From Anaeramoeba ignava BMAN (taxonomy: Eukaryota; Protista; Anaeramoebae), in contig JAPDFW010000054.1 in the NCBI GenBank assembly GCA_028826165.1, positions 372,001 through 436,000 of the forward strand: a stretch of DNA of 64,000 nucleotides, in the 5' to 3' direction. Below are positions 10,019 through 54,600 of the stretch, in pieces (the stretch's first letter is position 1; each line of letters begins with the position of its first letter). A model generated the notes under the pieces. It was not told the origin of the DNA and did no database searches. It was given only the letters and a program-made list of their open reading frames with translations. The position numbers and the translations under genes are program-made.

Positions 10019-12952
10019 ATGGTTTGTTATTTATTTTCTTTTTTTTTTAAAAAAATTAAAAAAAAAAATTTTTTCAATTAAAATTTAACTTAAAAAAAAA
10101 AATAAAAACAAAATAAAAACAAAAACAAAACAAAACAAAACAAAATAAAATAAAACAAATTTAGTCTGAAATTCACAGTTAGTTTTAATTCAATCAAAAA
10201 ATCAAAAAATCAAAAAATCAATAAAAAAATAAATAATAAATAATAAAATAATTTTTTATTATAAAAGAAATTGCTGTTGTTGGAGGAGGTGGAGTTGGTA
10301 AAAGTTGTTTAATTATTCGTTTTTTAAATGATGTTTTCTTTGAACAATATGACCCAACAACTGGTAATTGAAAAAAAAAAAAAAAAAAAAAATCGTTTTA
10401 TTTTATATTTTTTTTAATTTTTATTTATTTTTAAAAAAGAGGAAAGATATCGTAAAGATTTTATAATTGATGGAAAAGCAACTTCTCTTGATATTTTGGA
10501 TACTGCTGGTCAAGAAGAATTTAAGACATTAGGAGATCGAGTAAATTTAATTAATTATAAATAAAATTTAATTAATATAATTATAAATATAATTATAAAT
10601 TTAATTATAAATTTAATTATAAATATAATTATAAATTTAATTATAAATTTAATTATAAATTTAATTATAAATTTAATTATAAATTTAATTATAAATATAA
10701 TTATAAATTTAATTATAAATATAATTATAAATTTAATTATAAATATAATTTTAAAGTTCTATAAATTTAATAAATATAATTATAAATAATTATAAATTAT
10801 ATAAATTTAATTAAATTTAATTATAAATTTAATTATAAATTTAATTATAAATTTAAATTATAAATTTAATTATAAAAATTATAATTATAAATATAATTAT
10901 AAATTAATTATAAATATAATTATATAAATATAATTATAAATTTAATTATAAATATAATTATAAAATAATTAATAATATAATTATAAATATAATTATAAAT
11001 TAAAAATTTAATTATAAATTTAATTATAAATATAATTATAAATATAAATATAATTATAAATTTAATTATAAATTTAATTATAAATATAATTATAAATATA
11101 AATATAAATAAATAAATTATAAATTTAATTATAAATTTAATTATAAATTTAATTATAAATTTAATTATAAAAATTTAAATTATAAATTTATAAATTTAAT
11201 TATAAAATTTAATTATAAATTTAATTATAAATTTAAATAAATTTAATTATAAATTTAATTATAAAAATTTAATTATAAATATAAATTAATTATAAATTTA
11301 ATTATAAATTTAATTATAAATTTAATTATAAATTTAATTATAAATTATAAATAAAATAATTGCGAATTATAAATATAATAATTATATAATTATAATTATA
11401 AATAAATTATAAATTTAATTATAAATTTAATTAAATATAATTATAAATTTAATTATATTTAATTATAAATAAATTTAATTATAAAAATTATAATTATAAA
11501 TATAAATTTAATTATAAATTTAATTATAAATTTAATTTATAAATATAATTAATAAAATTTAAATAAATATAAATATAAATTTAATTATAATTATAAATAA
11601 ATATTATTATAAATTTAATTATAAATATAATTATAAATATAATTATAAATATAATTATAAATTTAATTATAAAAATTATAAATTTAATATATAAATTTAA
11701 ATATAATTATAAATATAATTATAAATTTAATTTAAATTTAATTATAAATTTAATTATAATTTATAATTATAAATTTAATTATAAATTTAATTTTATTAAA
11801 TTTATAATTTAATATAATTATAAATTTAATTATAAATAAATTAATTATTATTAAATTTAAATTATAAATTTAATTATAAATTAATAAATTTAATTATAAA
11901 TTTAATTATAAAATTTAATTATAAATTTAATTATAAATTTATTATAAATATAATTATTATAAATTATAAAATAAATTATAAATATAATTATATAAATAAA
12001 AATTAAATTAATATTAATTATAAAATAATAAATTATAATTATAAATTTAATTATAAATAAAAATTATAAATATAATTATAAATTTAATTATAAAATAATT
12101 ATAAATTTAATTATAAATTATAAATTTAATTGGTATAATTAAATTTAATTATAAATATAATTATAAATTTTTAATTTTACTTATAAATTTAATTATAAAT
12201 ATAATACAGATAAATTTAATTATAAATTTAATTATAAATTTAATTATAAAAATATAATTATAAATTTAAATATAAATAAATTTAATTATAAATTTAATTA
12301 ATTTAATTAAATTTAATTATAAATTTAATTAAATTTATAAATTTAATTATAAATATAAATTTAATTATAAATTTAATTATAAATTTAATTATAAATTTAA
12401 TTATAAATTTAATTATAAATTTAATTATAAATTTAATTATAAATATAATACAGATAAATTTAATTATAAATTTAATTATAAATTTAATTATAAATTTAAT
12501 TATAAATTTAATTATAAATTTAATTATAAATCTAAAATTAGAATTTCCAAAAAATGGAAGGGTTTCTATGTGTATTAAGTGTAGCATCAAAACCAACAAT
12601 TGGAGAAATACGAACAATAATACAACAAATCAAAAGAATCAAAGGAGACCAAATAGTTGGAGTTTTAGTAGCCAACAAATGTGATATAGCTGAAGAAGAT
12701 CGAGTAGTTTCACTTTCACAAGCAGAAGAATTAGCGCAAGAATTTGGAATGAAATTCTTTAGTTGCAGTGCAAAAACAGGATACAATGTTCAAGAAGCAT
12801 TTTTCCAGTGTGTTAGAGAAGTAATAAAAGATAAAAGAGATCAAGAACTCAATCCAAGAAAACTTACTCGAAATAAATCTTCTGTTAAACAACGGCAAAA
12901 AGCTCGCAAAAAAAGACAATCTGAAAGTTCTGGTTGCTGTATTTTGATTTGA
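10019..12952 (+). CDS. Divergent Ras-family GTPase (5 coding exons)
   Basis: Exons 10019-10021 (ATG), 10165-10177, 10268-10363, 10440-10540 and 12542-12952 splice in frame to [49 protein letters not shown] (CAAX). The first two micro-exons are less certain. Confidence 0.88.
10541..12541 (+). repeat. 2-kb intron consisting of a degenerate 12-mer array (ATAAATTTAATT)n
   Basis: GTAAAT donor at 10541, TTAG acceptor ending 12541; the repeat runs essentially from donor to acceptor. Confidence 0.95.
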
Positions 12953-15044: not shown

Positions 15045-15130
15045 TTAATTTTAAAAATAAAAAAAAACGTTTTATTAAATCAATCAAAAAATAATAATAA
15101 AAAAAGAAATGAGAAGAAAAATGAAAAATT

Positions 15131-17195
15131 TATTTTTATTATAAAATTAATTTTGAAATAATTTATTAGTAAATTACTATTTAATCTTATTTAAAATTAT
15201 TAATAAAAAATTAATTAAAATTTGTTATTAATTTATTTATTTATTTTTAATTATATTTAATTAATATATTATTATATTTTTATTATAAAATTAATTTTGA
15301 AATAATTTATTAATAAATTGTTATTTAATCCTATTTAAAATTATTAATAAAAAATTAATTAAAATTTGTTATTATTTTATTTATTTATTTTTTAATTATA
15401 TTTAATTAATATATTATTATACTTTTATTTTAAAATTAATTTTGAAATAATTTATTAATAAATTGTTATTTAATATTATTTAAAATTATTAATAAAAAAA
15501 TTAATTAAAATTTGTTATTATTTTATTTATTTATTTTTAATTATATTTAATTAATATATTATTATATTTTTATTTTAAAATTAATTTTAAAATAATTTAT
15601 TAATAAATTGTTATTTAATACTATTTAAAATTATTAATAAAAAATTAATTAAAAATTTGTTATTATTTTATTTAATTATTTTTAACTATATTTAATTAAT
15701 GTATTATTATATTTTTATTATAAAATTAATTTTGAAATAATTTATTAATAAATTATTATTTAATATTATTTAAAATTATTAATAAAAATTAATTAAAATT
15801 TGTTATTAATTTATTTTATTATTTTTAATTATATTTAATTAATGCATTTTTATATTTTTATTATAAAATTAATTTTGAAATAATTTATTAGTAAATTACT
15901 ATTTAATATTATTTAAAATTATTAATAAAAATTAATTAAAATTTGTTATTATTTTATTTATTTATTTTTAATTATATTTAATTAATGTATTTTTATATTT
16001 TTATTATAAAATTAATTTCGAAATAATTTATTAATAAATTGTTATTTAATATTATTTAAAATTATTAATAAAAAATTGATTAAAATTTGTTATTAATTTA
16101 TTTAATTATTTTTAATTATATTTAATTAATATATTATTATATTTTTATTTTAAAATTAATTTTGAAATAATTTATTAATAAATTACTATTTAATCCTATT
16201 TAAAAATTATTAATAATAAAAATTAATTAAATTTTATTTTATTATTTTTATTATATTTATTTATTTTTAATTATATTTTATTATAAAATAATTTTGAAAT
16301 AATTTATTAATAAATTGTTATTTAATATTTAAAATTATTAATAAAAATTAATTAAAATTTGTTATTATTTTATTTATTTAATTATTATTTAAAAATTATT
16401 AATAAAAATTATTAAAATTTTTATTATTTTAATTATTTAAAATTTTAATAAAAATTTAAAATTTATTAATTTTATTTATTTATTTTTAATTATATTTAAT
16501 TAATGTATTTTTATATTTTTATTATAAAATTAATTTTAAAATAATTTATTAATAAATTATTATTTAATATTATTTAAAATTAATAAAAAATTAATTAAAA
16601 TTTGTTATTATTTTATTTAATTATTTTTAATTATATTTAATTAATGTATTTTTATATTTTTATTATAAAATTAATTTTGAAATAATTTATTAGTAAATTA
16701 CTATTTAATATTATTTAAAATTATTAATAAAAATTGATTAAAATTTCCTTTTAAATATTTAATTATTTTTAATTATATTTAATTAATATATTTTTATACT
16801 TTTATTTTAAAATTAATTTTTGAAATAATTTATTAGTAAATTACTATTTAATCTTATTTAAAATTATTAATAAAAAATTGATTAAAATTTGTTATTATTT
16901 TATTTATTTATTTTTAACTATATTTAATTATTGTATTATTATACTTTTATTTTAAAATTAATTTTGAAATAATTTATTAATAAATTATTATTTAATCTTA
17001 TTTAAAATTATTAATAAAAAATTAATTAAAATTTGTTATTAATTTATTTATTTATTTTTAATTATATTTAATTAATATATTTTATATTTTTATTATAAAA
17101 TTAATTTTGAAATAATTTATTAATAAATTGTTATTTAATCCTATTTAAAATTATTAATAAAAAATTGATTAAAATTTCCTTTTAAATATTTAATT
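15131..17195. repeat. ~144-bp tandem satellite, about 14 copies, intergenic
   Basis: Anchor TTTTGAAATAATTTATT (or a close variant) recurs at about 15151, 15295, 15440, 15585, 15730, 15873, 16016, 16160, 16292, 16534, 16675, 16818, 16962, 17105. Confidence 0.92.
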
Positions 17196-17357
17196 GAAAA
17201 TAAAAAAGAGATAAAACTCTATTTTAAAATAAATTAAATATATAAATAAAAAAATATAAAAGAGAAAAAAAAAATTTTTTTTTATTTTTCATTTTTTTTT
17301 CATTTTTAATTATTTTTTAAATTTAAAAATTTTTACAAAACAAAAACAAAAAAACAA

Positions 17358-17948
17358 ATGACAGAATATAAATTAGTAGTTGTAGGAGGAGGAGGAGTAG
17401 GAAAATCCGCATTAACAATTCAATTAGTACAATCACACTTTGTAGATGAATATGATCCAACAATAGAAGATTCCTATCGAAGACAAGTAGAAATAGATGA
17501 AGAAATCTGTTTATTAGACATATTAGACACCGCAGGACAAGAAGAATATTCAGCAATGCGAGATTCATACATGCGTTCAGGAGAAGGATTTCTAATTGTA
17601 TTTGCAATCAATTCAAGAAATTCATTCGATGAAGTTTCCGTTTTTAAAGAGCAAATTTGCAGAGTTAAAGATTCAGATCATGTTCCTATGATTATTGTTG
17701 GTAATAAATCTGATCTTGAAAATGAAAGACAAGTTTCTTCTGGTGAAGGTCAAGATCTCGCTAAAACTTTTGGTTGTCCTTATATTGAAACTTCTGCTAA
17801 AACTAGAATTAATGTTGAAGAGGCTTTCTTTGGTTTGGTTAGAGAAATTAGAAAAGTTAAATTCGGTAAAACTGATGAGAAAACTACTGGAAAAACTACT
17901 AAAACTAAGAAAAAGAGAAAATTGTTTGGAAAATGCTCTTTAATGTGA
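17358..17948 (+). CDS. ras: Canonical Ras GTPase, intronless
   Basis: [46 protein letters not shown], polybasic tail and CSLM CAAX. Confidence 0.97.
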
Positions 17949-18035: not shown

Positions 18036-18313
18036 ATTTAATTTTAATTTTAATTTTAATTTTAATTTTAATTTTAATTTTGATTTTGATTTTAATTTTA
18101 ATTTTAATTTTAATTTTAATTTTAATTTTAATTTTAATTTTAATTTTAATTTTAATTTTTTTATTCAAATTATCAACATATTTTCAAAATAAAAACAAAT
18201 AATCTAAAATTTAATTCACAAATTCAAAACAAAACAAAAATTAAAAACAAAAATAATCAATAATCAATAATCAATAATCAATAATCAATAATCAATAATC
18301 AATAATCAATAAT
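18036..18313. repeat. (TTTTAA)n and (CAATAAT)n microsatellites between convergent 3' ends
   Basis: Seen directly at about 18036-18160 and 18255-18313. Confidence 0.9.
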
Positions 18314-20557: not shown

Positions 20558-22206
20558 TTATTCTTTGTTATTTGATTTAAATTTATTAAGAATATTTAAT
20601 TTAATTTCAAAATTCCTGCTTTGAGCAGGATGAACATCTGGAGAATCAATAAGTTTTTTTAATCTTTGAGCTTCATTTTCAATAAAATCAGGATCTTCAA
20701 GAAGATTTCGCATAATTTCTAAATAAAAATGACCTTTTGCATTTTGTATAACTAAATTACGAGTTTTTTCTGTAAGTTCTCTTCGAATTTTAGGATTTTC
20801 AATAAATATTTGTGCTAAATCATCGAGTTGTTTTATTGTTCCAAAAGATGTACCTAAAATTCCTTCTGGATTTCGATCTTTGAAACAGTATCTATTTACT
20901 TGTTCTACTAATTCTTCATATGTTTCTATTGAAATTTCCCATGGATTTTCTTTTGTTGTGTGTCCAAATATTAAATATGTTGGATATTTTTCAATTTTGT
21001 ATTTTTCACAAAGTTTTTGTGAATTTTTTTGATCGCAAAATACTGTTGCAAAAATCATATCTGTTTCTTTTTTAAATGTTTGAACTGCTTTTTCTAAATG
21101 TGGTTCAGCTAAATTTAAGATTAGATTAGATTTAGATTTAGATTTAGATTTAGATTTAGATTTAGATTTATATTTATATTTAGATTTATTTTATATTTAT
21201 ATTTATATTTATATTTATATTTATTATATTTATATTTATTATATTTATATTTATATTTATATTTATTATATTTATATTTATTATATTTATATTTATTATA
21301 TTTATATTTATTATATTTATATTTATTATATTTATATTTAATTATATTTATTATTTTATTTTTATTTTATTTATATTTTATATTTTATTTATATTTTATA
21401 TTTTATATTTTATATATTTATATATTTATATTTATATTTATATTTATATTTATGATTTTATATTTTATATTTTTATTTATATTTTTATATTTATATTTAT
21501 ATTTATATTTATATTTATATTTATATTTATATTTATATTTATATTTATATTTATATTTATATTTTTTATATTTTTTATTTTTATATTTTATATTTTATAT
21601 TTATATTTATATTTAGTATTTATATTTATATTTTATATTTTATATTTATATTTATATTTATATTTATATTTATTTTATATTTTATATTTTATATTTATAT
21701 TTATATTTATATTTATATTTTTATATTTTATTATATTTATATTTATATTTATATTTATATTTATATTTGTATTTATATTTATATTTATATTTATATTTAT
21801 ATTTATATTTTAGATTTAGATTTAATTTTAATTTTATATTTATATTTATATTTATATTTATATTTATATTTAGATTTATATTTATATTTATATTTATATT
21901 TATATTTATATTTATATTTATATTTATTTATATTTTGATTTATATTTATATTTAAATTTATATTTATATTTATATTTATTTTTATATTTGAAACGTTAAC
22001 CATTTTTCAATTAAAAAAAAAAAAGAAAAAAAAATTTTACTTTTGCTATCATTTTCAAGAAAAGCTACAACTGAACATGTATGAGGTCGAAGAAGAAATT
22101 GTTGATGAATATTCCAATCTACATTAATAACTCCATTTGATGTTAAAACAAGGACAAAAGCAACAATAAAAAAAACAAACAAACTAAAAATCTTTACTTC
22201 TTTCAT
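20558..22206 (-). CDS. ERp29/PDI-D-like protein (signal peptide, thioredoxin-like fold without CxxC, helical D domain)
   Basis: Exon 22206-22041 (signal peptide [20 protein letters not shown]), intron 22040-21109, exon 21108-20558 with [13 protein letters not shown] (cis-Pro loop) and [36 protein letters not shown] (ERp29 C-domain). Confidence 0.8.
21109..22040 (-). repeat. Intron filled with (TATATT)n on the + strand
   Basis: Hexamer array about 21120-21990 between GT-AG boundaries. Confidence 0.92.
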
Positions 22207-22293
22207 TTTAAAAAAAAAAAAATGAAATTGATCAAAAATAAAAAAAAATTTTTTTAATTTTTTTTTCATTTTTTTTTTAATTGAAAAATTAAA

Positions 22294-24858: not shown

Positions 24859-24923
24859 AAAACAAAAAATAAAAAAAAATTTTAATTTCATTTTTCATTT
24901 TTTTTTTTAATTGAAAAATTAAA

Positions 24924-36394: not shown

Positions 36395-38204
36395 TTAGTT
36401 ATGTTTAATTGGAATTTTTGGAAATTGTTCAAATTTAATTTCCAAATCAATTTCAAAATTATAAGGAAGTTGTAAAATACGACCACTTGGATATTCTTTT
36501 AATTTTAAATTTTAAAAAATAAAACATTTTAATTTAAAAAAAGTAAAACATTTTTTAATTTAAAAAAAATTTTTTACTTTTTAAATCAATTTCAAATGAG
36601 TTTAATTCTTCTATTTCTTGTTGATCTTGTCTTGATTGTTTTTCTTCTTTTTCTTCAATATTTTTTGGATCATTTAAATTATTATTATTGTTATTGTTAT
36701 TATTATTGTTGTTATTATCAACTCCATTTTGTTCTTCATTTTCCATCTAAATTATTTATTTTGATTTTAATTTTAATTTTAATTTTAATTTTAATTTTGA
36801 TTTTAATTTTAATTTTAATTTTAATTTTAATTTTAATTTTAATTTTTATTTTGATTTTAATTTTAATTTTAATTTTATTTTAATTTTAATTTTAATTTTA
36901 ATTTTAATTTTAATTTTAATTTTGATTTTTATTTTGATTTTAATTTTAATTTTAATTTTAATTTTATATTTAATTTTAATTTTAATTTTAATTTTTGATT
37001 TTAATTTTTGATTTTAATTTTAATTTTTAATTTTAATTTTAATTTTGATTTTGATTTATATTTTTAATTTTTATTTTTAATTTTAATTTTAATTTTTAAT
37101 TTTTAATTTTTAATTTTTTTGATTTTGATTTTGATTTTAATTTTAATTTTAATTTTAATTTTAATTTTAATTTTTAATTTTAATTTTAATTTTAATTTTA
37201 ATTTTAATTTTAATTTTAATTTTAATTTTAATTTTAATTTTAATTTTAATTTTGATTTTAAATTTGATTTTGATTTTGATTTTAATTTTAATTTTTGATT
37301 TTAATTTTATTTTAATAAATACATCAATAGTTGCTTGATTAACAGGTTTACAAGCACGACGAACAAAAGGATCAAATTCTGAATTATTATTTTGTTGAGT
37401 TTTCTTATTCTGTTCGGATTCAAACAAAATTTTCTCATTAATCAATTGATTTCTTTCATTAATTTCAAGAATTTTTTGTTGACTATGAGTAAACTTTGCT
37501 CTTTTTTTCTCAATTTCTTCATTTAATTCCTTCATTTGATTTTTGATTTCAATTTCTTTTTTATAATCTTTAATTTGTTTTGCAGCCTCGAGTTGAAATT
37601 CAAGATCCTGAAGATGGACAGCCAAAGTGGGTTTATTTTTCTTATTTTTAGCGATCATTTGATCGATTTCTTTATGAGTATAAACATGATTTTTTGCGTC
37701 TGAAAGTTGTTTTCTTAAGGATTTAATATTTTCAGTTGTAGGAAGTGGAACGTTATAAGAAATCATTGTTTGTCGCCAATCCTCGAATTCCTTCTGCTGG
37801 ATCGAGCTATTCGACACATATTTCAAGCTAAATCTCTTTGATTCTTTTGCAATTTTTAAGATGAAATATTTTGACGTATTTTTTGATCCAAGATCATAAC
37901 TTGATCCTTCAATAACGTCACCTATTTGTGCTATTTTATAAACAGGTGTTCCCCCAAATCCCCCTAAATTCACCCTTACAAACATCCCCTTCATCACTTT
38001 GTTGAAGAATGGTTCGTGAAGCCAGTGCTCAATTAGCTTCCGTGTCATCCGAACACTCCGTATTTGCTCTATTGTTACCATACCATTTGTTTCCGTTGTG
38101 TTTGTGGTGTTCGTTTTAGTGCTTTCTTCCCCGCTTTCTTTGCTTGTTTGGCTAGGTTCTTGTCCTGCTTGTGTTTGTATCATGTGTTTTCTTCCGTGAT
38201 ACAT
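36395..38204 (-). CDS. RTF1: Rtf1-like Plus3-domain protein (Paf1 complex), 3 exons, short N-terminus
   Basis: IRSVRMTRKLIEHWLHEPFF..GMFVRVNLG..PVYKIAQI..FSLKYVSNS..EFEDW (Plus3), INERN, FDPFVRRACKP. Introns 37322-36747 and 36577-36496 give a C-terminus ending ..YNFEIDLEI..KHN-stop. Confidence 0.88.
36747..37322 (-). repeat. Intron of (AAAATT)n (sense)
   Basis: GTATTT donor, TTTAG acceptor; source of the spurious KIKIKI/ILILIL ORFs. Confidence 0.9.
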
Positions 38205-38212
38205 TTTTTTAG

Positions 38213-39654: not shown

Positions 39655-41058
39655 ATGGATAACGAAAAAGAAAAACCTAAATTGCCATTTCTTCAAGCGA
39701 TCGAAAGCCAAGAAATCACACTCAAAAAAGCAAAAACAATAGAATCATTAAGTATCCTTGAGGGATTAAATTATCTAAACGAATCAATCAAAAGAGATAA
39801 ATTTCATTTAGGACTTTCTCAAATGAAATTAAATGAATCAAAAATCAAAATTTCGGAACTTCTTCAAATAATGGGAGAAACAATAAAAGAAAACGGAAGA
39901 GATGAATACATTGACATTTCGCAAAAGTTAGAACCTTATGAAAAAAGACCAAAAGTTGTTGAAAGTTTCCGAGAAGTAGTGAAAGATGTAAAAGAATTAT
40001 GGATTCAAAAATACGATTGGAAAGAAGATATAAGGGTGATCGAAGATAACTTGGTTGGAGCTAATATCATGGTCGTGATCCCCCGCGAATGGAACCATAA
40101 AGCTCTTCTTATGGCGCATGGATTTAGACCTGAAAATTTAGTCGAACAAAGATGCGATATTGACACAGAAGAATTATTCACCAAAAGACTCCTAAAAAAT
40201 GGATGGATTGTGGCAATGACATCCTATCGACGCAACGGGAGGGTTGTGAGAGAAGGCATTGAGGACATCAACAATTTACGGGGTTTCGTCGTAGAGAATT
40301 TTGGCGAAATTGAGGTATGCATTCTTCAGGGAAGATCAATGGGAGGTTGTGTAGTCACTCATATTGCCGAAATGCACCCTGATTTATATGACGGTTGTGT
40401 TGCAATAGGAGCTGCTTTGTATACCAAGGATGGCGAAAATCCGCTTGATTGGGAATACGAACCAAAAATTCCAATTATTTATTTAACTAACCAATCTGAA
40501 TTGGGTGTGATTCAAGATTATATCAAAAAATCAGGAGAGAAAAAAAAGAAGAACGTGATTATTCCTGCTATATGGGAAGTCTGGAGAGAGGGTCATGATC
40601 TCGTTTCTCAACAGGAGCGCTACATTGCGTTCAAATACTTGATGGATTGGATTCAATTCAAATCATGTGCAACTTATCGCAAAACAAACTTATTTATAAA
40701 TCATCAAAAGAAAAAAGTGGAAAGTCCTGTTTTTGATCAGAATGGTGCTCAAGGTGTTGTTGTAGATATGGATCTTGTTTATGGAAGTTTCTCCCTTAAT
40801 TTTTCTGCGGAAGATATGAAGAAGTTGAATATTGGTCTTGGAAAATGGTTTGATTTTTCTGTTGATGGTTCAAATACTAAGTTTCATGCTTATTATGGTT
40901 CTTATCCTTTTTTTGTTGAAAAGGGATCTTGGATTACTTATGATGATCCTGATGGTCTTCTTTGCTTTGAGATTTTGAATTATTATCAAGTTATTAGTGC
41001 TATTGAAACAGCTGGTGTTTCGATTGGAACAAAAGTTTTTATTTACAAGAACTTTTAA
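39655..41058 (+). CDS. Alpha/beta-hydrolase with WH2-like N-terminus and a C-terminal domain resembling SAM hydroxide adenosyltransferase (DUF62) C-domain
   Basis: LLMAHGF oxyanion motif, GRSMGG nucleophile elbow, EGH His; C-terminus G.VVDMD.VYGSFSLN..VEKGSWI..DGLL..SAIETAGVSIGTKVFI; intronless. Confidence 0.75.
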   Translation: MDNEKEKPKLPFLQAIESQEITLKKAKTIESLSILEGLNYLNESIKRDKFHLGLSQMKLNESKIKISELLQIMGETIKENGRDEYIDISQKLEPYEKRPKVVESFREVVKDVKELWIQKYDWKEDIRVIEDNLVGANIMVVIPREWNHKALLMAHGFRPENLVEQRCDIDTEELFTKRLLKNGWIVAMTSYRRNGRVVREGIEDINNLRGFVVENFGEIEVCILQGRSMGGCVVTHIAEMHPDLYDGCVAIGAALYTKDGENPLDWEYEPKIPIIYLTNQSELGVIQDYIKKSGEKKKKNVIIPAIWEVWREGHDLVSQQERYIAFKYLMDWIQFKSCATYRKTNLFINHQKKKVESPVFDQNGAQGVVVDMDLVYGSFSLNFSAEDMKKLNIGLGKWFDFSVDGSNTKFHAYYGSYPFFVEKGSWITYDDPDGLLCFEILNYYQVISAIETAGVSIGTKVFIYKNF

Positions 41059-41249: not shown

Positions 41250-41303
41250 TTTTTTCATTTTTCATTTTTCATTTTTCATTTTTCATTTTTCATTTTTCAT
41301 TTT
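41250..41303 (+). promoter_or_regulatory. Tandem (TTTTTCA)n initiator-like array upstream of TAF11
   Basis: 7 heptamer copies ending a few nt before the ATG at 41308. Confidence 0.55.
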
Positions 41304-41307
41304 AAAA

Positions 41308-42087
41308 ATGTCAAATCCTTCAAAAAAAAAAAAAAACAAAAGAAAAACTGACGAAAGTAACGAAGAAGAAGAAGAACAACACAAAATACGAATCCGACAA
41401 AGCGATCGAAAAAGACAAACACACATCAAATCAAAATCCCAACGAACAATATTAGAAGAAACAGGACCTAAGAGGAAAGGGAAGAAAAAAAAGAACGACA
41501 GCGATGACGAATACGTTGAAGAAAGCGAATCAACAACAGATTCAATAACAGATGAAGACGATGAAATTGAGCGAGAAATCAACGAATTGCAGGACTTGAA
41601 TTCTCATGATTCTGGTGATGAAACACCGCTCACAAACCCAACAACACCTATTATTTCTTGGAGATCAGAAAATCACACTGAAAAAGAAGAAAATTCAGAT
41701 GATGATTTTGAATATGATTCTTATCAAGCGGAAATTGACTCAAATACTCGTGAGTATTTGAAGACCTACAGAATCAAATTTCTGCAAGAGTTTGATCAAA
41801 CTCCTGTTAAGGATCGATATTGGAAACACCGCAAAGTTGAGTTGAATACTCATGAAGTCAAAAAAATACTTGGAAATATTCCAAATTTACCTTCAGCTGA
41901 TCTTATTAAAATTGTTAAAACTATTTCCCGTAATTTTCTCTCTCAAATTATCGCTGAAAGTAGGCTTGTTATGTCAGAAAATGATGAGTTTGGTTCCATT
42001 TTACCTTCTCATATTCGTGAGGCTTTTAGAAGAATGTCTGAAAAAGGTCAAATTCCTTGGTTGAAAAAGGAAAAGTTTTTGGATTGA
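41308..42087 (+). CDS. TAF11: TFIID subunit TAF11-like histone-fold protein
   Basis: Acidic/basic N-terminus then DRYWKHRK..VKKIL..ISRNFLSQIIAESRLVM..SILPSHIREAFRRM, matching the TAF11 fold (RYE.YRR..KVFVGEVVEEA..PL.PKH+REA.RRL). Confidence 0.82.
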   Translation: MSNPSKKKKNKRKTDESNEEEEEQHKIRIRQSDRKRQTHIKSKSQRTILEETGPKRKGKKKKNDSDDEYVEESESTTDSITDEDDEIEREINELQDLNSHDSGDETPLTNPTTPIISWRSENHTEKEENSDDDFEYDSYQAEIDSNTREYLKTYRIKFLQEFDQTPVKDRYWKHRKVELNTHEVKKILGNIPNLPSADLIKIVKTISRNFLSQIIAESRLVMSENDEFGSILPSHIREAFRRMSEKGQIPWLKKEKFLD

Positions 42088-42461: not shown

Positions 42462-45400
42462 TTAGTTAATAATTCCACGAGTTTCTCTTGAAATTTTCTT
42501 CATTTCCTCATCAGTAGGAGGTTCAAAATGGAAAACAGGAACTTCATCCAAAGGAGCATAAGATTCAAGACAACCAAAAATGGAGTTATTCAAATTTTGA
42601 ACAATTTTTGCATTTTGAAGAAAAATTTTTTGTTCGGTTGAAACTGATTTATCATTAAGAACATTATTAACATAAATCAAGTGGTAACTGAAATCAAGAG
42701 CATCAAAAACTTCTCTTTGACCCAAAAAGTGTATAATTGTTGAGCCTGCCCAAGCAAATCCATCTCCAAATATTTCCTGTTTTGAAAATAATTGTTCTTG
42801 TGTTTGTGCGTTTGGATCTTTTTCGGGTGCTAAGCAAAACATGAATTGTAAACTACTCCATAATCTATAGAATTCGTTAGATCGATCAACGTTGAAAAGT
42901 CCAGGTTTTGAATCTCCTAACCATTTAGAACGTACTGGATCAAGCATCTTGTTAACGTGAAGAAGTGCTGCTTTAAATAGTGACATTTTCTTTGAAAGAG
43001 GTCGATAAATCTATTTATATTTTAATTTTATAAATGAATTTTAATTTTATAAATGAATTTTAATTTTAATTTTAATTTTATAAATGAATTTTAATTTAAT
43101 TTTAATTTTATAAATGAATTTTATATTTTAATTTTAATTTTAAATTTAATTTTAATTTTATAAATGAATTTTAATTTAATTTTAATTTTAAATTTAATTT
43201 TAATTTTATAAATGAATTTTATAAATGAATTTTAATTTTATAAATGAATTTTAATTTTAATTTTAATTTTATAATTTAATTTTATAAATGAATTTTAATT
43301 TAATTTTATAAATGAATTTTATAAATGAATTTTATAATTGAATTTTATAATTGAATTTTATTTACCTCCTCAGATTGCCTAGATAAAGAAACAAGAGAAT
43401 TCGAAATTTTGGTTGATTTCCCAAGAGAACTCTTTTGCAAATTAACAACAAGTTGTTCAACAGACTTACTAAGAGTAGAATAAATATTTGAATTCATATT
43501 AGAATCATCAATTAATCTTGGAGTTTCAGTAACATCAATCCATTCATCAGGTTCATTCTCATCAGGATTTTGATCATTTTCATTTTCCTTATTTTCAGAA
43601 TTTGGGAAAATAGCCAAAAATGGGGCAGAATTAATAAAAGTTCTAAAACGTAATTGCGGCATTGCTTGATCAAAAAGCCGCATAAGAAGAATAGTATTTC
43701 CAATTTCGCGGAAATTCTGGAATACATCAGTATCCAAAGCTTCATAATCGCGGATAACTTTCAGTGGGATATCAAAATATCCGAAGCAGCCTTGGATCCC
43801 GTAATCAAGTGATGGAAGATTTGTTTTTGTTGAGATTCCGCTAAGAAGTTCCTCCACATAAGGCGCAAGAACATTTTGGATTTTCAGTCCAACATTTGTC
43901 AAACATTCCTGTGCAATCAATGGAAGATTTTCTTCCCCAATGATTCTAAGCATGGACAAAATATGCGGGATCCCGAAAAATTCCCTTGTTAACGCATTAA
44001 ATTTATCGAATGTTTGATTCATGTCTTCAGATCCATAAAGAAATTCGGCAGGGATTTTCGGTGGGTTGTCCCGAAGAACTTTCTCAACATATGAGATTTG
44101 TGAGCGAATGAATCTTTGAGTCACTGAATTATACACAAAATTAGGGATTAAATCATCGATAAATTCAGAAATGCAATGAAGAATGATTCTTCCGTGTAAA
44201 GAAACAAGCGATGTTGTCTCATCAATTTCCTTGAGCATGCTTTCGAAGCTATCAATCTCGAGATATCCTGAAAGAAGTTGGTGAGTATAACGGATCCCTT
44301 CAAGCAGCTGTTCAAGCTCAACAATTCCTGTGATGTTTGTCGCCTCAAATCTTTGAATTGCGTTGTTAATATTCTCCCGAATCAAGTTGTTCATTTTTTG
44401 TGAGAGTAATTTGCTGATATTAATTGTTCTTCCTAAAAGTTTGAAATGTCTTTGTTTCAAAATAATATCATATCTCGATTTCGGCGGATTTAATTTTTCC
44501 TTCTTTGAAACCTTGGAAATTTCCGCGCGATAATCAGGATCTAAAAGAATTGTAGAGCTCCAATGTTTGTAATGTACAAATATGTGTTCCGCCATTTGAA
44601 AGATTAATTGATCAAAACAAAGATCCACTTCGGCTTGTATTTCCTCAAATAGGAATTGTTGTTTTAGTTTCGATAGTGTAAGTTCTGCTGCGTCGTTATA
44701 AATTGATAATGGGAAAAGCATCATTTCAGCAATGTGAGATGTTCTGAGTGAAAGTGAATGATATGCCAATATCCATGGTAAAGAATGTTCAACGGGAAAC
44801 TAGATAAATTTTTATATTTTAATATTTTAATATTTTAATATTTTTATATTTTAATATTTTAATATTTTAATATTTTTATATTTTAATATTTTTATATTTT
44901 AATATTTTAATATTTTTATATTTTAATATTTTAATATTTTTATATTTTTATATTTTAATATTTTAATATTTTAATATTTTTATATTTTTATATTTTAATA
45001 TTTTAATATTTTAATATTTTAATATTTTAATATTTTAATATTTTAATATTTTAATATTTTAATATTTTAATATTTTAATATTTTAATATTTTAATATTTT
45101 AATATTTTTAATATTTTTATATTTTAATATTTTTATATTTTTATATTTTTATATTTTTTTTTATATTTTTTAATATTTTAATATTTTTTATATTTTAATA
45201 TTTTTATATTTTTAATATTTTAATATTTTTAATATTTTTAATATTTTTAATATTTTTATATTTTTATATTTTAATATTTTTAATATTTTAATATTTTAAT
45301 ATTTTTATATTTTTATATTTTTATATTTTTATATTTTAATATTTTAATATTTTAATATTTTTAATATTTTAATATTTTTATATTTTTAATATTTTTATAT

Positions 45401-48400
45401 TTTAATATTTTTATATTTTTAATATTTTTATATTTTTAATATTTTTTATATTTTAATATTTTTTATATTTTAATATTTTTAATATTTTTATATTTTTAAT
45501 ATTTTTATATTTTTATATTTTAATTTTTATATTTTAATATTTTTATATTTTTATATTTTTTATATTTTTATATTTTTAATATTTTTATATTTTTTATATT
45601 TTTAATATTTTAATATTTTTATATTTTTAATATTTTAATATTTTTATATTTTTATATTTTTATATTTTTTATATTTTTTATATTTTTATATTTTTATATT
45701 TATTTTAATATTTTAATATTTTTATATTTTAATATTTTTATATTTTTATATTTTTATATTTTAATATTTTTATATTTTTATATTTTTATATTTTTATATT
45801 TTAATATTTTAATATTTTAATATTTTAATATTTTAATATTTTAATATTTTTATATTTTTATATTTTAATATTTTACTTGAATCTTATCAGAAAGTTGTAA
45901 ATGAAATTCTCTAAACCATAAAAATCCAAGATCACCACATTTATGAATTGTTTTACCAAGTTGTAAAATATAAGGGAAAATCCAAATTTTCTCTGAAAAC
46001 TCCCGAAGTTGATTAACATGAGCTGAAGAAAGTTGTTTTGTTTTCACAACTGCACCTTTCTTATCGAAAACAGAATGAACATTTTCAATAAGCATTAATA
46101 ATAAAGTAAATTGTGTAGATGTAATTCCAACTTGTTTAAGTCTGAAATTGAAAGGTTTCTTGTATTTCTTGCCAAGAACAGCAGGATCTAATGGAACTTT
46201 TTCATCAATCCAGTCTGCAAGAATTGTTCTAATAAACAATAATTTATTAAATGTTTCTTTCTTTTTTTTTGCTGTTTTTTGGATCATTGGATGGATTGTG
46301 TTTTGCACAAATTCTTGAATTTCTGTGTAAATATATGATCTGATTATATAAGCAAAAATACTTTCGTTTTTTTTAAGTAAATCGGAAAGTCCTTTAACCA
46401 TTGCAATATATTCAACGAATGAATTTAATTCTTTTGCAGTATAATTGTATCTTACGACCTATTAAATAAATTTTAATTTTAATTTTAATTTTAATTTTAG
46501 ATTTTAATTTTAATTTTAATTTTAATTTTAATTTTAATTATAATTTTGATTTTAGTTTTTATAAATTAGCTCACCTTTTCATAATCTGATGTTGATGTCG
46601 GACATTTAACAGTTGTTGGATGATGATATTTAAAAGCAGTTTGTTCCATAATAGCTGAAGTCCATTCAGATAATTGGCGTAATCCTCGAATAAGTAAATC
46701 AATAACTTTTGTTCTTTGTTGAGAAGTTAAATCTTCTTCATTAATAACTTGATTTTTGATTTCACCGATTGTGTGGCAAAATTCAGATATATATTTGTTA
46801 TTTTTTGTTCTTTCTTCTTCTATATGATTAACTAATAAATAATCTGTTGGTGTTTTTTTATCTTCAAGTGGACCCCAAATAGAAGATGTATAAAAAGGAA
46901 CTTGTGTAAGAAATTCATCAGTTTTTGTTGCCATATCTCCATAAAGTAACAAAAATGGAGTTTTCTATTATATTTAATAAAATATATAATAAAATTTATA
47001 TTTAATAAAATTTATATATTTTTAATCTCTTTTTTAATAAGAACTAACTTTCAAAATCTTTCCAATTCTTGAATTTGGAATATTCTTCATTTTGAATGGG
47101 TTTTTTTTCTCGTTTTTTTGATCTCCAACAAAAATTAAACAACTAATAATCATTCGAATTTGTCTATCCTTTTCACTTGGATAAAGATATAATTTGTTTT
47201 CACATTTATCTAAATAATAATTAAGTAGCATATCAAGAATTCCTTCATAACTATTATTTAAATTTTAATTTAATTTTTAATTTTAAATTTAAATTTATTT
47301 TTATTTTAATTTTATTTTGATTTTTAAATTTACCCATCAATTTTAGATATTTCTGTTTTCAAATGATGAATAAGTGAATATTTATTGGCAAGAAACAAAC
47401 TAATTGCATGCATTTCTTCAACAAGTTGAATAGATTCAATTTCTGTACTTGAAATAATTGAAAAAGCTCTGAAAAAGAAAATTTAATAAAATTTTTAATT
47501 TTAATTTTAATTTTAATTTTAATTTTAATTTTAATTTTAATTTTAAACTTTAATACCTTTTATAATGAGAAAAATCATTTGAAAAAGATGGTTTTTGATT
47601 TAAAATCAAATCAACTTGTATATATGAATCAATAAGTTTTCCTAAAGCATCAAGTAAACAATTTGAAATTACAACATCTTTTTTTGTAATCATTGATTTA
47701 ATAATCTAAAAAAATAATTAAAAAAAAATAATTAAAAATTTATTTAAAAATTTAATTTGTATAAAAATACTGAGCAAATATAAGCTGTTGTATCATCTCT
47801 GAATTTAATTAATTTTCTTGCGTTTTGAAGAAGTGGTTCAAGTAAATCTGATGTTAATTTATAAAATTCTTTTGTTACTTCTTCATTTGGAGGAGGATCT
47901 AGTTCATTTTTAGTCTATTTTTATATTTTGAATTTGATTTTAATTTGAATTTTGATTTTGATTTTGATTTTAAATTTGATTTTGATTTTGAATTTGATTT
48001 TAATTTTGAATTTGATTTTGAATTTAATTTTGATTTTGATTTTGAATTTGATTTTGAATTTATTTTTGAATTTAAATTTTAATTTTAATTTTGAATTTGA
48101 ATTTGAATTTGATTTTGAATTTGAATTTATTTTTGAATTTAAATTTTAATTTTAATTTTAATTTTGAATTTTGAATTTGAATTTGAATTTGAATTTTGAT
48201 TTTGAATTTGATTTTGAATTTGATTTTGATTTTGAATTTTGATTTTGAATTTGAATTTGAATTTGAATTTGAATTTGATTTTGATTTTGATTTTGATTTT
48301 GAATTTGAATTTGAATTTTGAATTTTGAATTTTGAATTTGAATTTGAATTTGAATTTGATTTTAAATACCTTTGTTATGGTATTTGTAATACTTCGATGT

Positions 48401-49399: not shown

Positions 49400-51488
49400 T
49401 TAATAGTTTAAAAATCGAAAAGCTGTTTCTTTTTCTTCAATTAATTCTTTTGCACTTTCTTCCATTTTTTTCTTTGTAAATTCTTCAATTTTTAAATTTT
49501 TTATAATTTGCCATTCTGAATTAAAGCAAACAACAGGAAAAGAATAAACAATATCTCTTGGAATTCCATAAGATCCATCTGAAATTACACCAAAAGAAGT
49601 AATTGAATTTGACTAAGCAAAAAAATAAAATAAAAAGCAAAAAAGTGGAATTTTAACGGAAAAAAAAATTTTTTTTTTTCTTGTTTAAAATTTACAGGAG
49701 TTCCTTGAATCCAATCTCTCATATGATCACAAATAGCTTGAGCTGCTGAAGCTGCTGAAGATAAACCTCTTGCATTAATAACAGTTGTTCCTCTTTGTTG
49801 AATTAATTCGATAAAATCTTTTTGGATCCATGTTTTATCTTTAATAACTTCTTCAACTCGAATTTCTTCATCATTTTCATTATCGATTTCATCATCTTCA
49901 TTTATAAAATAAGCTTGAGATACATCAGGAAATTGTGTTGAACTATGATTTCCCCATATTATTACATTTCGAAGTGTTGAAACATTACGATTTGCTTTTA
50001 ATGCTATTTGATATTTGGCTCGATTAAGATCAAGTCTTGTCATTGCACAAAAGTTACTATTTCTAATTCTTGGTGCATTTTTCAAGCAAATTAAACAATT
50101 TCTATTAAAATTTCAATAAAAATTAAAATTCATTTTAAAATTAAAATTAAAATTAAAATTTAAAATTAAAATTAAAATTAAAATTAAAATTAAAATTAAA
50201 ATTTAAATTTAAAATTAAAATTAAAATTAAAATTAAAATTAAAATTAAAATTAAAATTAAAATTAAAATTAAAATTAAATTTAATATTAAAATTCAAATT
50301 TATAAAATTAAAATTAAAATTAAAATTAAAATTAAAATTAAAATTAAAAATAAAATTAAAAATCGGATAAAAATTAAAATTAAAATTAAAATTTAAAATT
50401 AAAATTAAAATTAAAATTAAAATTAAAATTAAAATTAAAATTAAAATTAAAATTAAAATTAAAATTAAAATTAAAATTAAAATTAAAATTCGGATAAAAA
50501 TTAAAATTGAAATTAAAATTAAAATTAAAATTAAAATTAAAATTAAAATTGAAAATCGGATAAAAATTAAAATTAAAATTAAAATTAAAATTAAAATTAA
50601 AATTTGAATTTATACGTGTTTGCTGGATTTCCAACAACTAAAACCTTAATTCTTCTATCTGCATATTCATTAATAGCTCTTCCTTGTTCTTCAAAAATTT
50701 TAGAATTTGCTTCTATTAAATCTTTTCTTTGCATATTTTTCCCTCTTGGTTTTGCACCAATAAGTATAGCGTATTGACATTTTTCAAAAGCAACTTTCAA
50801 ATCTGTTGTAATTGTAATAGATTTCAAAGAAGAAAATAAACATTCTTCTAATTCCATTTGAAGAGCTTTTTAAATTGAATTTAAAATTAAAATTAAAATT
50901 AAAATTAAAATTAAAATTAAAATTAAAATTAAAATTAAAATTAAAATTAAAATTAAAATTAAAATTAAAATTTAAAATTAAAATTAAAATTAAAATTAAA
51001 ATTAAAATTAAAATTAAAATTAAAATTAAAATTAAAATTAAAATTAAAATTAAAATTTAAAATTAAAATTAAAATTAATATCAAAATTAAAATTAAAATT
51101 AAAATTAAAATCAAAAATTAAAATTAAAATTAAAATTAAAATTAAAATTAAAATTAAAATTAAAATTAAAATTAAAATTAAAATTAAAATTAAAATTAAA
51201 ATTAAAATTTAAATTGAATTTAAAATTAAAATTAAAATTCAAAATTAAAATTAAAATTAAAATTAAAAATAAAATTAAAATTAAAATTAAAATTAAAATT
51301 AAAATTTAAATTTAAAATTTATTATTAAATGGTTTACCTTCAAGTAAAGGAAATGCAGGTTCAATATCAAGTAATGCTAAATTAATTAATTGACTTTTGC
51401 CAAATATTTCACCATTAGCAACTTTAAATGCAACAATTTGACCAATTTGACCAGCAGCACCTGTAATACAAACATGAAGAGGTTTCAT
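49400..51488 (-). CDS. MDH1: Cytosolic-type malate dehydrogenase, 4 exons
   Basis: ITGAAGQIG, GAKPRGKNMQRKDLIEAN (specificity Arg retained), VGNPANTNC, MTRLDLNRA, IWGNHSSTQFPD, RGLSSAASAA, SYGIP..YSFPV. Confidence 0.96.
50102..51337 (-). repeat. Two MDH introns of (AAAATT)n on + (about 50102-50615 and 50866-51337)
   Basis: Hexamer arrays flanking MDH exon 2. Confidence 0.9.
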
Positions 51489-51615
51489 TTTAAAGAATAA
51501 AGAAAGAGAAAAAAATGATTTTTATTTTTAATTTTTAATTTTTCATTTTTAATTTTTTAATTTTTTAATTTTTTCATTTTTTCATTTTTCATTTTTCATT
51601 TTTTCATTTTAACTG

Positions 51616-54600
51616 ATGACATTTTATCAAGAATTATGTTTAGATATTTTAGATTCATTTGGAAATGTAACAAAAACAATAGCAGAAACTTTACTTCGCC
51701 AAGGAGCATCACAAATAAGTGATATTTCAAAAGCAACATTACTTCCACCTCATGAAGTTAGAATTGGATTAGCAACTCTTTATACACATAATATTGTTAG
51801 CAAAACTAAAGAAGGTTATAAGATTTTTCCTCTTCATATTCTTTCAAGACTTAGATTTCCTCAGTTTATTCATCTTGTTAAAAAAAAATATAAGAAAAAA
51901 TCTCATCCTGTTATTGTTGAATATCTTCTTATTGTTGGTACTTCTTCTGCTGCAAAAATTATCGAGGATTTAACAACTCCAAATAATAAATATACAAAAG
52001 GTTGAAAATAATTCATTTCAAATTTAATTTATTTAATTTAATTTGATTTAATTTAATTTAATTTAATTTAATTTAATTTGATTTAATTTAATTTAATTTG
52101 ATTTAATTTAAATATTTAATTTAATTTAATTTAATTTAATTTAATTTGATTTGATTTAATTTAATTTAAATATTTGATTTAATTTGATTTAATTTAAATA
52201 TTTAATTTTAATTGATTTAATTTAATTTAATTTGATTTGATTTAATATAATTTAATTTAATTTAATTTAATTTAATTTAATTTGATTTAATTTAATTTAA
52301 TTTAATTTAATTTAATTTAATTTAATTTAATTTAATTTGATTTAATTTAATTTAATTTGATTTAATTTAAATATTTAATTTAATTTAATTTAATTTTATT
52401 TAATTTGATTTAATTTAAATATTTAATTTAATTTGATTTAATTTGATTTAATTTGATTTGATTTAATTTAATTTAATTTAATTTAATTTAATTTAATTTA
52501 AATATTTGATTTAATTTGATTTAATTTAAATATTTAATTTAATTTAATTTAATTTAATTTAATTTGATTTGATTTAATTTAATTTTATTTAATTTGATTT
52601 AATTTGATTTGATTTAATTTGATTTAATTTGATTTTAATTTGATTTAATTTAAATATTTAATTTAATTTAAATATTTGGTTTGGTTTAATTTAATTTAAT
52701 TTAATTTAATTTAATTTAATTTGATATTTAATTTGATTTAATTTAATTTAATTTAATTTAATTTGATTTAATTTAATTTAAATATTTGATTTAATTTGAT
52801 TTAATTTAATTTAAATATTTGATTTAATTTGATTTAATTTAATTTAATTTAATTTAATTTAATTTAATTTAAATATTTGATTTAATTTAAATAGAAATCT
52901 TCACTCAAATAGAAATTCAACAAGCAATTAATGAACTTATCCGTGATTTATTAATTATTGATCCAAGTTATAGTATTTTTACACAAATTCAAAATCCAGA
53001 TAACAAAAGATTTGCTGAAAAAAAAACAGAAGAAATTGAAGAAAAAGCAAAATCTAAAAAAAGAAAGAAAAAAGAAATAAATGAATATGAACCTATTAAA
53101 ATTGAAATTAACACAGAAACTGTTAGGAAATTTCATTCTTTAGATTTTGTAGATTTTTTATTATATTTTTTATTATATTTTTTATCCGATTTTTTTTCAT
53201 TTTCAAAATTACTTTTTGAATTTTTAAAATTAGGATGCAAAAAATTATTTAAATACTATCAATGAGGAAAATATAGAAACTAATGAAGAAATAACAAATT
53301 TAGACAATCAAAATGAAATGAAAGAAAATGTTGAAAAAAGCAAAAAGGAAAATAAAGAAGAAGATGAAAAAAATAAAGAAAATGAAGATGAAAAAAAGAA
53401 ATCAAGGAAATCAAAATCAAAAAAATCAAAACACAAACATGAACATAAACATAAGCATAAACATAAGCATTCAAAATCAAAAGAGAAATCCAAAAAGGAA
53501 AAATCCAAAAAGAAGAAAATTGATCAAATCAAATCAAAAATGGAAATTATTCAAGAAAATAAATCACAAGTTCATATTGATAATTCAGCAATTATTCTTC
53601 AAATAAATTTATCACATTTTATTACACTTTATAGGAATCATTTAATTACAAAATATATTTCAAATACTGTTAGAGAAGATATTGGTGAAGCAGCTTCAGC
53701 TATTTTAGATATTGTGAATTTTGCAGAAATGAATTATAAACTTACAAATATAAAAGGATTGGAAAAATATGAAAATTTACATTTTCAATGTAGTTATTAT
53801 TAAATAATAATAAATATTAAATAATAATAATAATAATAATATTAAATAATAAATAATATTAAATAATAATAAAATAATAAATAATAATAAATAATAATAT
53901 TAAATAATATTAAATAATAATATTAAATAATAAATAATATTAAATAATATTAAATAATATTAAATAATATTAAATAATATTAAATAATAAATAATAATAA
54001 TAATAAATAATATTATTAAATATTTTTTATTCACAATAGTCTCTTTTTCCAGAAAATGCCTTTTGAAAATCTTCCCAGAATCAAATTCACAAAGACCACA
54101 ACATAATAAAATAATTGATATTTTATGTGATGAAAGAATTCGGTTATTAAGAGACATCGAACTTGAATCACTTCTTCAATCTCACAAAAGCAAAAACAAT
54201 TCAAAAGTTTTTACATCAGAAATTCTTAAACAACGTTCTTCAAATTTAGTTTTTGATTTATCAACAATTTCTCAAAAAATGAAAGAAAGAATTTTAAGTG
54301 GAATTGTTTCTAAACGTTTTGGTTCAAAATCCTTTAGAATATTTAATTTATTACTTCGTAAAGGAATGTTAGAAGAAAAAATCATTGCAAATATGACTTT
54401 ATTTTCTCCTCAAGAAACAAAACAAGAATTATATCGACTTCTTCAAGAAAAAGTTGTTTTTCTTCAAGTAAATTAATTTTATTCCAAAAAATTTTTTTCC
54501 GATTTTGAAAAATTTTAATTTTTAAATTAAAATCAAAAGCCAATTCCTCGTTCAAGTGATAATTCTCATGCTAGAGCTCTTTATCTTTGGAAAGTTAATT

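Follow-up and report, generated by a model that had tools for sequence, protein, structure and literature searches.

An exon-scale A-to-T sawtooth at the synonymous sites of Anaeramoeba ignava, with a Ras-family gene at its extreme

Strand compositional asymmetry in nuclear genomes is usually weak and is visible only at scales from 10 kb to megabases (Mb). The leading strand of replication is G/T-rich by bacterial and human convention, and a G/T-rich coding strand is the known mammalian asymmetry of transcribed regions; Green et al. in 2003 and Touchon et al. in 2004 reportedly described transcription- or splicing-coupled asymmetries, with a coding-strand excess of G+T and changes of composition near splice sites. 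In yeast nucleosome-depleted regions, poly(dA:dT) is polar, T-rich upstream and A-rich downstream, and is read by RSC. At human meiotic break sites, C>N and A>N changes fall on whichever strand is single-stranded, and to the left of the break this is the forward strand (PMC7615360). The present analysis concerns a 64-kb stretch of DNA (the window; contig C55:372001-436000) of Anaeramoeba ignava, whose published genome is 80.65% A+T (PMC11550330), a value that the base composition here agrees with, and in particular a Ras-family GTPase gene at positions 17358-17948 of the window, in which the ending of synonymous codons switches from A to T in mid-gene. The data indicate that the Ras switch is the extreme of an exon-scale A-to-T sawtooth that runs across the 264 kb sampled, and that this pattern is itself an extreme form of strand compositional asymmetry, reaching about 0.9 at silent sites and reversing within 600 bp, once per exon. 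Literature searches returned no description of it, in Anaeramoeba papers (the genome paper included) or elsewhere.

The product of the Ras open reading frame (ORF) is matched over residues 5-165 by Pfam PF00071 (Ras; 5.8e-60), carries the G1 (GxxxxGKS), G3 (DTAGQE), G4 (NKxD) and G5 (SAK) motifs and the C-terminal CaaX of the family, and has Anaeramoeba rasD-like proteins as its closest named relatives. Paralogs of it are listed as A. ignava proteins by NCBI and EukProt. Silent positions were counted as the third positions of the eight fourfold codon families, 77 sites in all, and the recount returned exactly the numbers given on either side of the switch by the initial annotation of this DNA (Table 1). 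The best change point falls at codon 92 (nt 17634), where the A and T counts before and after differ at 1.7e-14 by Fisher's test and the change-point statistic reaches 62, the highest value among 200,000 permutations being 40. All fourfold families flip together. The shift of leucine from TTA to CTT and TTG and the restriction of AAG and GAG to the later part were likewise as first described: leucine is written TTA six times and CTA once before the switch and CTT, CTC, TTG (twice) and TTA after it, both AAG and GAG stand solely after it, and isoleucine ATA is confined to the part before it. The switch is also carried by other copies of the gene. Four separate loci encode a 99-100% identical Ras protein, all with the switch, and six further Ras paralogs of 60-83% identity switch as well, all ten using purine-ending codons first and pyrimidine-ending codons later. 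The four near-identical copies are 95-99% identical in DNA over the gene and some 100-150 nt on each side, with unrelated flanks beyond; they are therefore independent places in the assembly, and the limits of their homology suggest retroposition, or gene conversion limited to the transcribed unit. Beside one of them (L004:2317-2472), approximately 225 nt downstream of the intact gene, the last 52 Ras codons and the 3' untranslated region occur a second time as a partial tandem duplicate. This truncated duplicate was considered as a neutral control and set aside, being almost identical to its parent and thus carrying no signal.

To place the Ras gene among others, 264 kb were sampled, consisting of the window and 200 kb of contig C1, or about 0.6% of the 42.8-Mb assembly (147 contigs). 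Gene models were ORF-based, and pieces of ORFs were kept where their composition was coding-like and were divided wherever an ultra-AT tract intervened. The initial annotation had allowed that fourfold-site skew might prove flat along genes, with Ras as an isolated outlier; in the 264 kb this is not so, as 84% of 95 ORF pieces with a length of 400 nt or more are richer in A at the fourfold sites of the 5' end than at those of the 3' end. The mean 5'-minus-3' fourfold AT skew of these pieces is 0.45, Ras having the largest value at 1.62, and the share of A and T at fourfold sites passes from 57/31% in the first 300 nt through 39/39% in the middle to 35/55% in the last 300 nt (Fisher 4e-67). The drift that had been claimed for the neighbouring hydrolase, TAF11 and Rtf1 genes is seen in all three, and Pfam supports their names (a weak Hydrolase_4, TAFII28 for TAF11 and Plus-3 for Rtf1). 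In long pieces the skew is limited to approximately the first 250-400 nt and the last 250-350 nt, with a flat middle in which A equals T, and when the skew is fitted by a two-exponential logistic model its decay lengths are 313 nt (5') and 248 nt (3'), with a likelihood-ratio chi-square of 264. The middles of long ORFs are unordered, and a patchwork of A and T runs as a general feature of gene middles was rejected on a lag-1 autocorrelation of just 0.08. Where zones are present they are box-like, with the proportion of A or T (pA or pT) at 0.8-1.0, and the relative position of the switch varies from 0.25 to 0.79. A fixed zone length, such as a nucleosome multiple, was also discarded, as was, for want of any useful correlation, a relation of skew amplitude to fourfold G+C content (GC) or gene length. 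A Rho-like GTPase gene (73022-73600 of the C1 sample, minus strand) has a step as perfect as that of Ras. The position of the Ras switch in mid-gene follows from the same geometry, because the gene is a 591-nt single exon between two AT tracts and its two end zones abut.

The asymmetry is more than an exchange of A for T. Twofold sites, which report transitions only, show a G fraction at NNR codons of 0.096-0.10 in the 5' zone, 0.20 in the middle and 0.149-0.16 in the 3' zone, and a C fraction at NNY codons of 0.196-0.20, 0.27 and 0.127-0.14, respectively, with both 5'-versus-3' contrasts significant at approximately 1e-5 to 1e-10. GC thus drops towards both exon ends, with the largest loss of G at the 5' end and of C at the 3' end. 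Codon positions 1 and 2 move in the same direction, their combined G+T fraction being 0.407, 0.440 and 0.466 from 5' to 3' (p = 7e-14). The 5' zone is therefore A/C-rich and the 3' zone G/T-rich, a keto skew beyond the change from A to T alone, and the A/C-to-T/G drift originally claimed is borne out at both classes of site. On either strand it is the strand heading away from the exon boundary that is A/C-rich, and genes of both strands look alike, which agrees with the original remark that the drift occurs on the minus strand as well.

The unit within which the pattern runs is the exon. Split genes were confirmed through consecutive Pfam profile coordinates on neighbouring ORF pieces, and comprise CYFIP, cyclophilin (1-53, 53-158), NOG1, malate dehydrogenase (three exons), a GPN-loop GTPase (1-123, 124-239), a Ras-like GTPase of the window and Vps41. 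An earlier ORF-based classification of neighbours across short gaps proved noisy and was replaced by these junctions and by explicit GT..AG prediction. At seven long introns (347-1980 nt), fourfold sites number 33 A and 70 T in the 150 nt of exon before the intron, against 69 A and 41 T in the 150 nt of exon after it, a jump with p = 1e-5; in CYFIP, for example, the exon before a 1068-nt intron ends T-rich and the next begins A-rich. In the second set, of 28 introns predicted by GT..AG, exon ends are T-rich in every intron-length class (-0.17 to -0.56), and the start of the next exon is less T-rich or A-rich for introns of at least 70 nt, with no jump at 30-70 nt. Taken singly, only the classes of 70-130, 300-700 and 700+ nt reach significance for this jump (three of the four from 70 nt upwards, on small numbers), and it is largest at the two predicted introns longer than 700 nt. 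Introns themselves are A-rich and then T-rich. Short first exons are T-rich throughout, as is the 150-nt exon 1 of malate dehydrogenase (15 T, 4 A). Since a single mRNA thus holds several A-to-T cycles, tRNA pools, translation ramps and anchoring to the cap or the poly(A) site alone are excluded; and since the pattern restarts at long introns, involves all codon positions and is symmetric between strands, it must be set at the level of DNA or unspliced RNA and not by translation. Its cause is anchored at exon boundaries, reaches approximately 300 nt, treats both strands alike and touches all codon positions. The initial annotation had excluded tRNA-driven bias, and this is upheld by the restart after introns, by the joint response of all fourfold families and by codon positions 1 and 2. 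Its picture of a drift along the gene was right as to the kind of process, sub-kilobase and strand-polarised, and has to be amended in that the polarity follows each exon and not the gene or transcript. Two of the split genes deserve separate mention. The Ras-like GTPase of the window (10418-12949) is interrupted by an intron of about 2 kb that comes directly after its DTAGQE motif and after switch II. Vps41 (L019:8011-8973; C1 188011-188973, minus strand) begins with four exons of approximately 150-200 nt, the intervening introns being 80-110 nt long and bounded by GTAA...AG, and each of these small exons tends to go from A to T.

Outside the coding sequence lie tracts of extreme composition, some 21% of 60-nt windows across the 64 kb having at most 5% GC. 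The skew of the flanking exon rises with the length of the adjacent AT tract (Spearman rho about 0.22, p about 0.03 on each side), and the 5' skew is +0.17 without a tract and +0.48 with a tract of at least 600 nt. Tracts are not the sole correlate, in view of the T-rich short first exons and of A-rich gene starts far from any long tract. In the most strongly skewed genes, leaders are A/C-rich and trailers T/C-rich, flipping to A-rich soon after the stop. Every landmark in this genome is a passage from T-rich into A-rich sequence: from the promoter into the leader, from an exon into the 5' splice site, from the polypyrimidine tract into the following exon, and from the trailer into the DNA beyond the poly(A) site. 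A compact case is provided by an RPC82-like gene (plus strand) and the malate dehydrogenase gene (minus strand), whose first exons are divergent across a shared promoter of approximately 125 nt. Read on the plus strand at 51338-52002, the whole 690-nt block between two AT tracts is one A-to-T cycle over both genes. An initiator-like (Inr-like) TTTTCATTTT motif stands before many start codons, for example at 17286-17318 and 51540-51612, and some eight tandem copies of it precede the TAF11-like gene (41250-41307).

A comparison with orthologs from related species, as the initial annotation had proposed, was made with 158 kb of the sister species A. flamelloides, taken from two strains around Ras orthologs, and both the gradient and the ultra-AT tracts are absent from this sample. 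Its spacers have 20-28% GC, and just 0.1% of 60-nt windows are at or below 5% GC. The Ras orthologs, 82-85% identical in protein, have mixed A and T at fourfold sites, and no gradient was found in 26 ORF pieces (5' skew +0.11, 3' skew +0.04, p = 0.25). One dictyostelid Ras gene showed nothing comparable. Among the species sampled, the trait is found only in A. ignava, the one bearing ultra-AT tracts.

These observations allow the construction of a model, favoured tentatively and at somewhat less than an even chance, in which the skew is written by strand-asymmetric mutation on single-stranded DNA beside AT tracts. An AT-rich tract would probably be nucleosome-free and fragile, and a break within it would be resected. 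The strand going 5' to 3' towards the tract would then more often be single-stranded, for example as a 3' overhang, and the exposed strand may lose C and A through deamination, depurination and error-prone fill-in to become G/T-rich, with its complement, heading away from the tract, turning A/C-rich. Deamination accounts for the transition pattern, and depurination followed by insertion of A at fill-in would account for the A/T transversion bias. In composition, exon ends left of an AT tract are T-rich and C-poor and exon starts to its right A-rich and G-poor, which is the sign of break-resection asymmetry, and GC falls at both exon ends, more on one strand, as asymmetric GC-to-AT pressure predicts. 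The fall in GC on both strands, the dependence on tract length and the contrast between species all fit single-stranded DNA mutation. The UDG family is present twice in A. ignava, and the TP6A_N domain of Spo11 was not found there in a search that is inconclusive for so short a domain; neither result is informative on mechanism. Several points weigh against this reading. Two stochastic gradients anchored at opposite boundaries should blend and not step; the average profile fades over 250-310 nt, yet Ras and the Rho-like gene step. In Ras a step model exceeds a linear-logit or a two-exponential gradient by 8 log-likelihood units, with a sigmoid width fitted at about 0 nt, and in the Rho-like gene the step exceeds the gradient by 12.5, where simulated steep gradients give at most 5.2. 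An A-rich skew persists at those gene starts that have no long AT tract within 1 kb (+0.27, n = 17), and in the 264 kb there is no polar skew within AT tracts or in the average non-coding flank, although the leaders and trailers of the strongest genes do carry it. In addition, introns of 70-130 nt partly restart the pattern too, clear zones occur in only about half of long ORFs and range from 100 to 630 nt in length, and the DNA sampled is about 0.6% of the genome.

The initial annotation had left the choice between a mutational or repair process and selection on transcript composition; that the process is strand-polarised below the kilobase has stood, and in preferring mutation between the two we infer from composition. 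Selection on strand or pre-mRNA composition, in which the order of A before T would keep false T-to-A steps, close to the real ones, out of exons in a genome of nearly pure A+T introns and spacers, is a serious contender with a chance of perhaps a third. In one variant, A/C-rich and U/G-rich zones at the ends of exons would serve as binding sites in exon definition or in the placement of nucleosomes. Selection could readily accommodate a switch that is single and step-like at a variable position, the strong differences from gene to gene and the box-like zones, the restart at exon boundaries with its greater strength at long introns, the A-then-T course of introns themselves, A/C-rich leaders and trailers that are T-rich and become A-rich soon past the stop, A-rich gene starts even where no tract is near, and the absence of the pattern from A. 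flamelloides with its less extreme spacers. However, avoidance of U should raise C at NNY codons in the 5' zone, where C instead drops from 0.265 to 0.201, and G at NNR codons likewise drops in the 3' zone. The unordered middles of long exons are not expected either, intronless genes such as Ras have no need of exon definition, an A-then-T exon resembles an intron in this genome so that cryptic splicing is not obviously suppressed, and several separate selective reasons would be required for one pattern. A stronger version, that the synonymous sites of A. ignava form a strand-composition code, with A(/C)-ending codons first and T(/G)-ending codons last in each exon, in which T-to-A steps occur only at true landmarks and are read to find exons, is possible although we hold it unlikely; were there such a code, the near-perfect step in Ras would be selected and not mutational.

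The remaining explanations are a good deal less probable than either mutation on single-stranded DNA or selection. Sense transcription together with antisense transcription starting in downstream tracts may leave a transcription-associated asymmetry, and the G/T-rich coding strand of 3' zones agrees with the mammalian case, AT tracts being plausible as promiscuous promoters. However, the sign does not stay single over a transcription unit but reverses inside it and restarts with each exon, and A/C-rich 5' zones would need transcripts heading towards the tracts and not away from them, which makes this account improbable. Replication-fork polarity, with AT tracts as fixed origins or sites of fork convergence and a leading/lagging bias writing the skew, is slightly further from probable. 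A skew that is strand-symmetric and flips at AT tracts would suit it, a fixed boundary would produce a step-like change, and AT-rich islands are replication origins in fission yeast. However, the period is one exon (0.2-3 kb), far under any known replicon size, and the sign changes follow exon structure, with a restart at introns. A skew so near saturation would need nearly every tract to be active in nearly every cycle, the convention of a G/T-rich leading strand would make the tracts termini and put origins inside exons, and the flat middles of long exons are unlike the linear gradient of fork direction. Translational selection, through the tRNA pool, a codon ramp, tRNA re-use or avoidance of mRNA structure, is very improbable. 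Position-dependent codon usage does exist in other organisms (PMC6892556), and the first half of the Ras mRNA is less folded than synonymous shuffles (-5.5 versus -7.8 kcal/mol per 60 nt). However, folding of the whole Ras coding sequence does not differ significantly from such shuffles (z = 1.3; 60-nt windows z = 1.25) and is barely altered by reversing the order of codons, and avoidance of mRNA structure as the main cause was dropped on this ground. The pattern restarts after introns, which are absent from mRNA, all fourfold families switch together with shifts at codon positions 1 and 2, zones span at least 100 codons and lie at 3' ends as well, and the trend published for 3' ends is towards A-rich codons, opposite in sign to that seen here (PMC6892556). 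An assembly chimera, or recent recombination, of two paralogs differing in codon usage would explain the sharpness of the Ras switch and nothing else. The same switch in four independent loci and six diverged paralogs excludes the chimera that the initial annotation had named as its own refutation, the Rho-like gene switches too, and the trend is present across the 264 kb sampled, so that this explanation retains almost no probability.

Table 1. Coordinates of the features discussed, in positions of the window unless a contig is given
Feature	Position	Strand	Basis
Ras-family GTPase gene, single exon, 196 aa, CaaX end CSLM, TGA stop	17358..17948	+	ORF and Pfam
A zone of Ras: fourfold sites 32 A, 2 T, 3 C; Ile ATA, Leu TTA, no AAG/GAG	17358..17633	+	
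T zone of Ras: fourfold sites 35 T, 3 A, 2 C; Leu CTT, CTC, TTG; AAG/GAG present	17634..17948	+	
A/C-rich leader abutting the ATG, continuing A-zone composition into non-coding DNA	17325..17357	+	Sequence
T-rich promoter-like stretch with two Inr-like TTTTCATTTT motifs, recurring before other ATGs; putative function	17286..17318	+	
T/C-rich trailer after the stop, continuing T-zone composition, ending near AATAAA	17949..18040	+	Sequence
Upstream ultra-AT tract, ~2.2 kb (2214), GC 3-5%	15100..17285	.	
Downstream (AATTTT)n tract (176)	18041..18150	.	
Four dispersed Ras copies, L001-L004	C55:389358, C134:116538, C81:259854, C100:101198		DNA comparison
Split Ras-like GTPase, upstream exon piece, Ras profile (HMM, hidden Markov model) 34-66, before a ~2 kb intron of 0.7% GC	10418..10561	+	Pfam
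Split Ras-like GTPase, downstream exon, HMM 70-161; fourfold restart 13 A/3 T (first 150 nt), T-rich end	12542..12949	+	
Rtf1-like gene with a Plus-3 domain, running from A-rich to T-rich along its own strand	37167..38207	-	Pfam Plus-3
Hydrolase-like gene, A-rich start, G/C-richer middle, T-rich end	39655..41058	+	Pfam, weak Hydrolase_4
TAF11-like gene, strong A-to-T (delta 1.40)	41308..42087	+	Pfam TAFII28
CYFIP, three consecutive exons, FragX_IP HMM 2-95, 95-292, 293-725	43345..46964	-	Pfam
Malate dehydrogenase, exons 1-3, with AT tracts of 445 nt and 487 nt between	49588..51489	-	Pfam
RPC82-like gene, first exon, A-rich then T-rich	51616..52002	+	Pfam

Some further features of the sampled DNA were recorded. 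More than 100 actin loci are present in the A. ignava assembly, and between some copies on different contigs (L031-L036) just 3 of 151 fourfold sites differ, a sign of concerted evolution or of a very recent spread. Actin paralogs were accordingly rejected as replicates, their concerted evolution meaning that they are not independent. Tandem ankyrin-type duplicates (22285-24858 and 24915-27680 in the window; C1 122767-126401) have long A-rich runs at fourfold sites at their end, contrary to the trend, and the repeat units of such genes show a short-period alternation of A and T. Long spurious ORFs (NFNF..., KIKI..., LILI...) arise in several frames and on both strands from AT-rich tandem repeats and are not genes; examples in the window lie at 5331-6188, 21125-21938, 31062-32517, 58457-58982 and 61548-62244.

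Should the pattern prove mutational, A. ignava would offer a natural setting where damage or repair of single-stranded DNA near AT tracts dominates the neutral spectrum, and it would show how far a local mutation bias can override codon usage. Should it prove selected, synonymous sites would hold a further, new layer of information that marks exons in an extremely AT-rich genome. In either case, models of codon usage, dN/dS and gene finding for A. ignava must be position-aware, and the A-to-T pattern could help to predict exon boundaries.

Among described systems, meiotic double-strand break (DSB) hotspots (Hinch et al. 2023, PMC7615360) resemble the A. ignava pattern in that the sign flips at a point, is symmetric between strands and ranges from below a kilobase to kilobases, and in that the strand whose 3' end faces the flip point loses C and A. 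The sign agrees as well, A. ignava being G/T-rich to the left and A/C-rich to the right of an AT tract. However, human hotspots show a weak excess of new mutations and are not known for a near-saturated equilibrium composition (PMC7615360), whereas the A. ignava pattern has a shorter range (approximately 300 nt) and steps inside short genes. Position-dependent codon usage, as a 5' ramp or as AT-rich codons near the stop (PMC6892556), likewise ties codon choice to position in the gene; however, it extends over about 10-50 codons, is anchored at start and stop, is modest and cannot restart at introns. Replication skew, as in bacterial GC skew and in the skew jumps and N-domains of the human genome, shares the sawtooth, the abrupt jumps and the joint movement of keto and AT skews, but operates from 10 kb to Mb, is unrelated to exon-intron structure, and would have the opposite sign if AT tracts were origins. 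Transcription- and splicing-coupled asymmetries have one sign per transcription unit, are weak and are found mainly in introns, whereas in A. ignava the sign reverses within each exon at a strength of about 0.9. The polarity around the presumably nucleosome-free AT regions of A. ignava is the same as that of yeast nucleosome-depleted regions, on either strand; however, the yeast tracts lie within approximately 100 bp inside the depleted region, whereas the polarity in A. ignava extends 300-400 nt into coding DNA, at synonymous sites.

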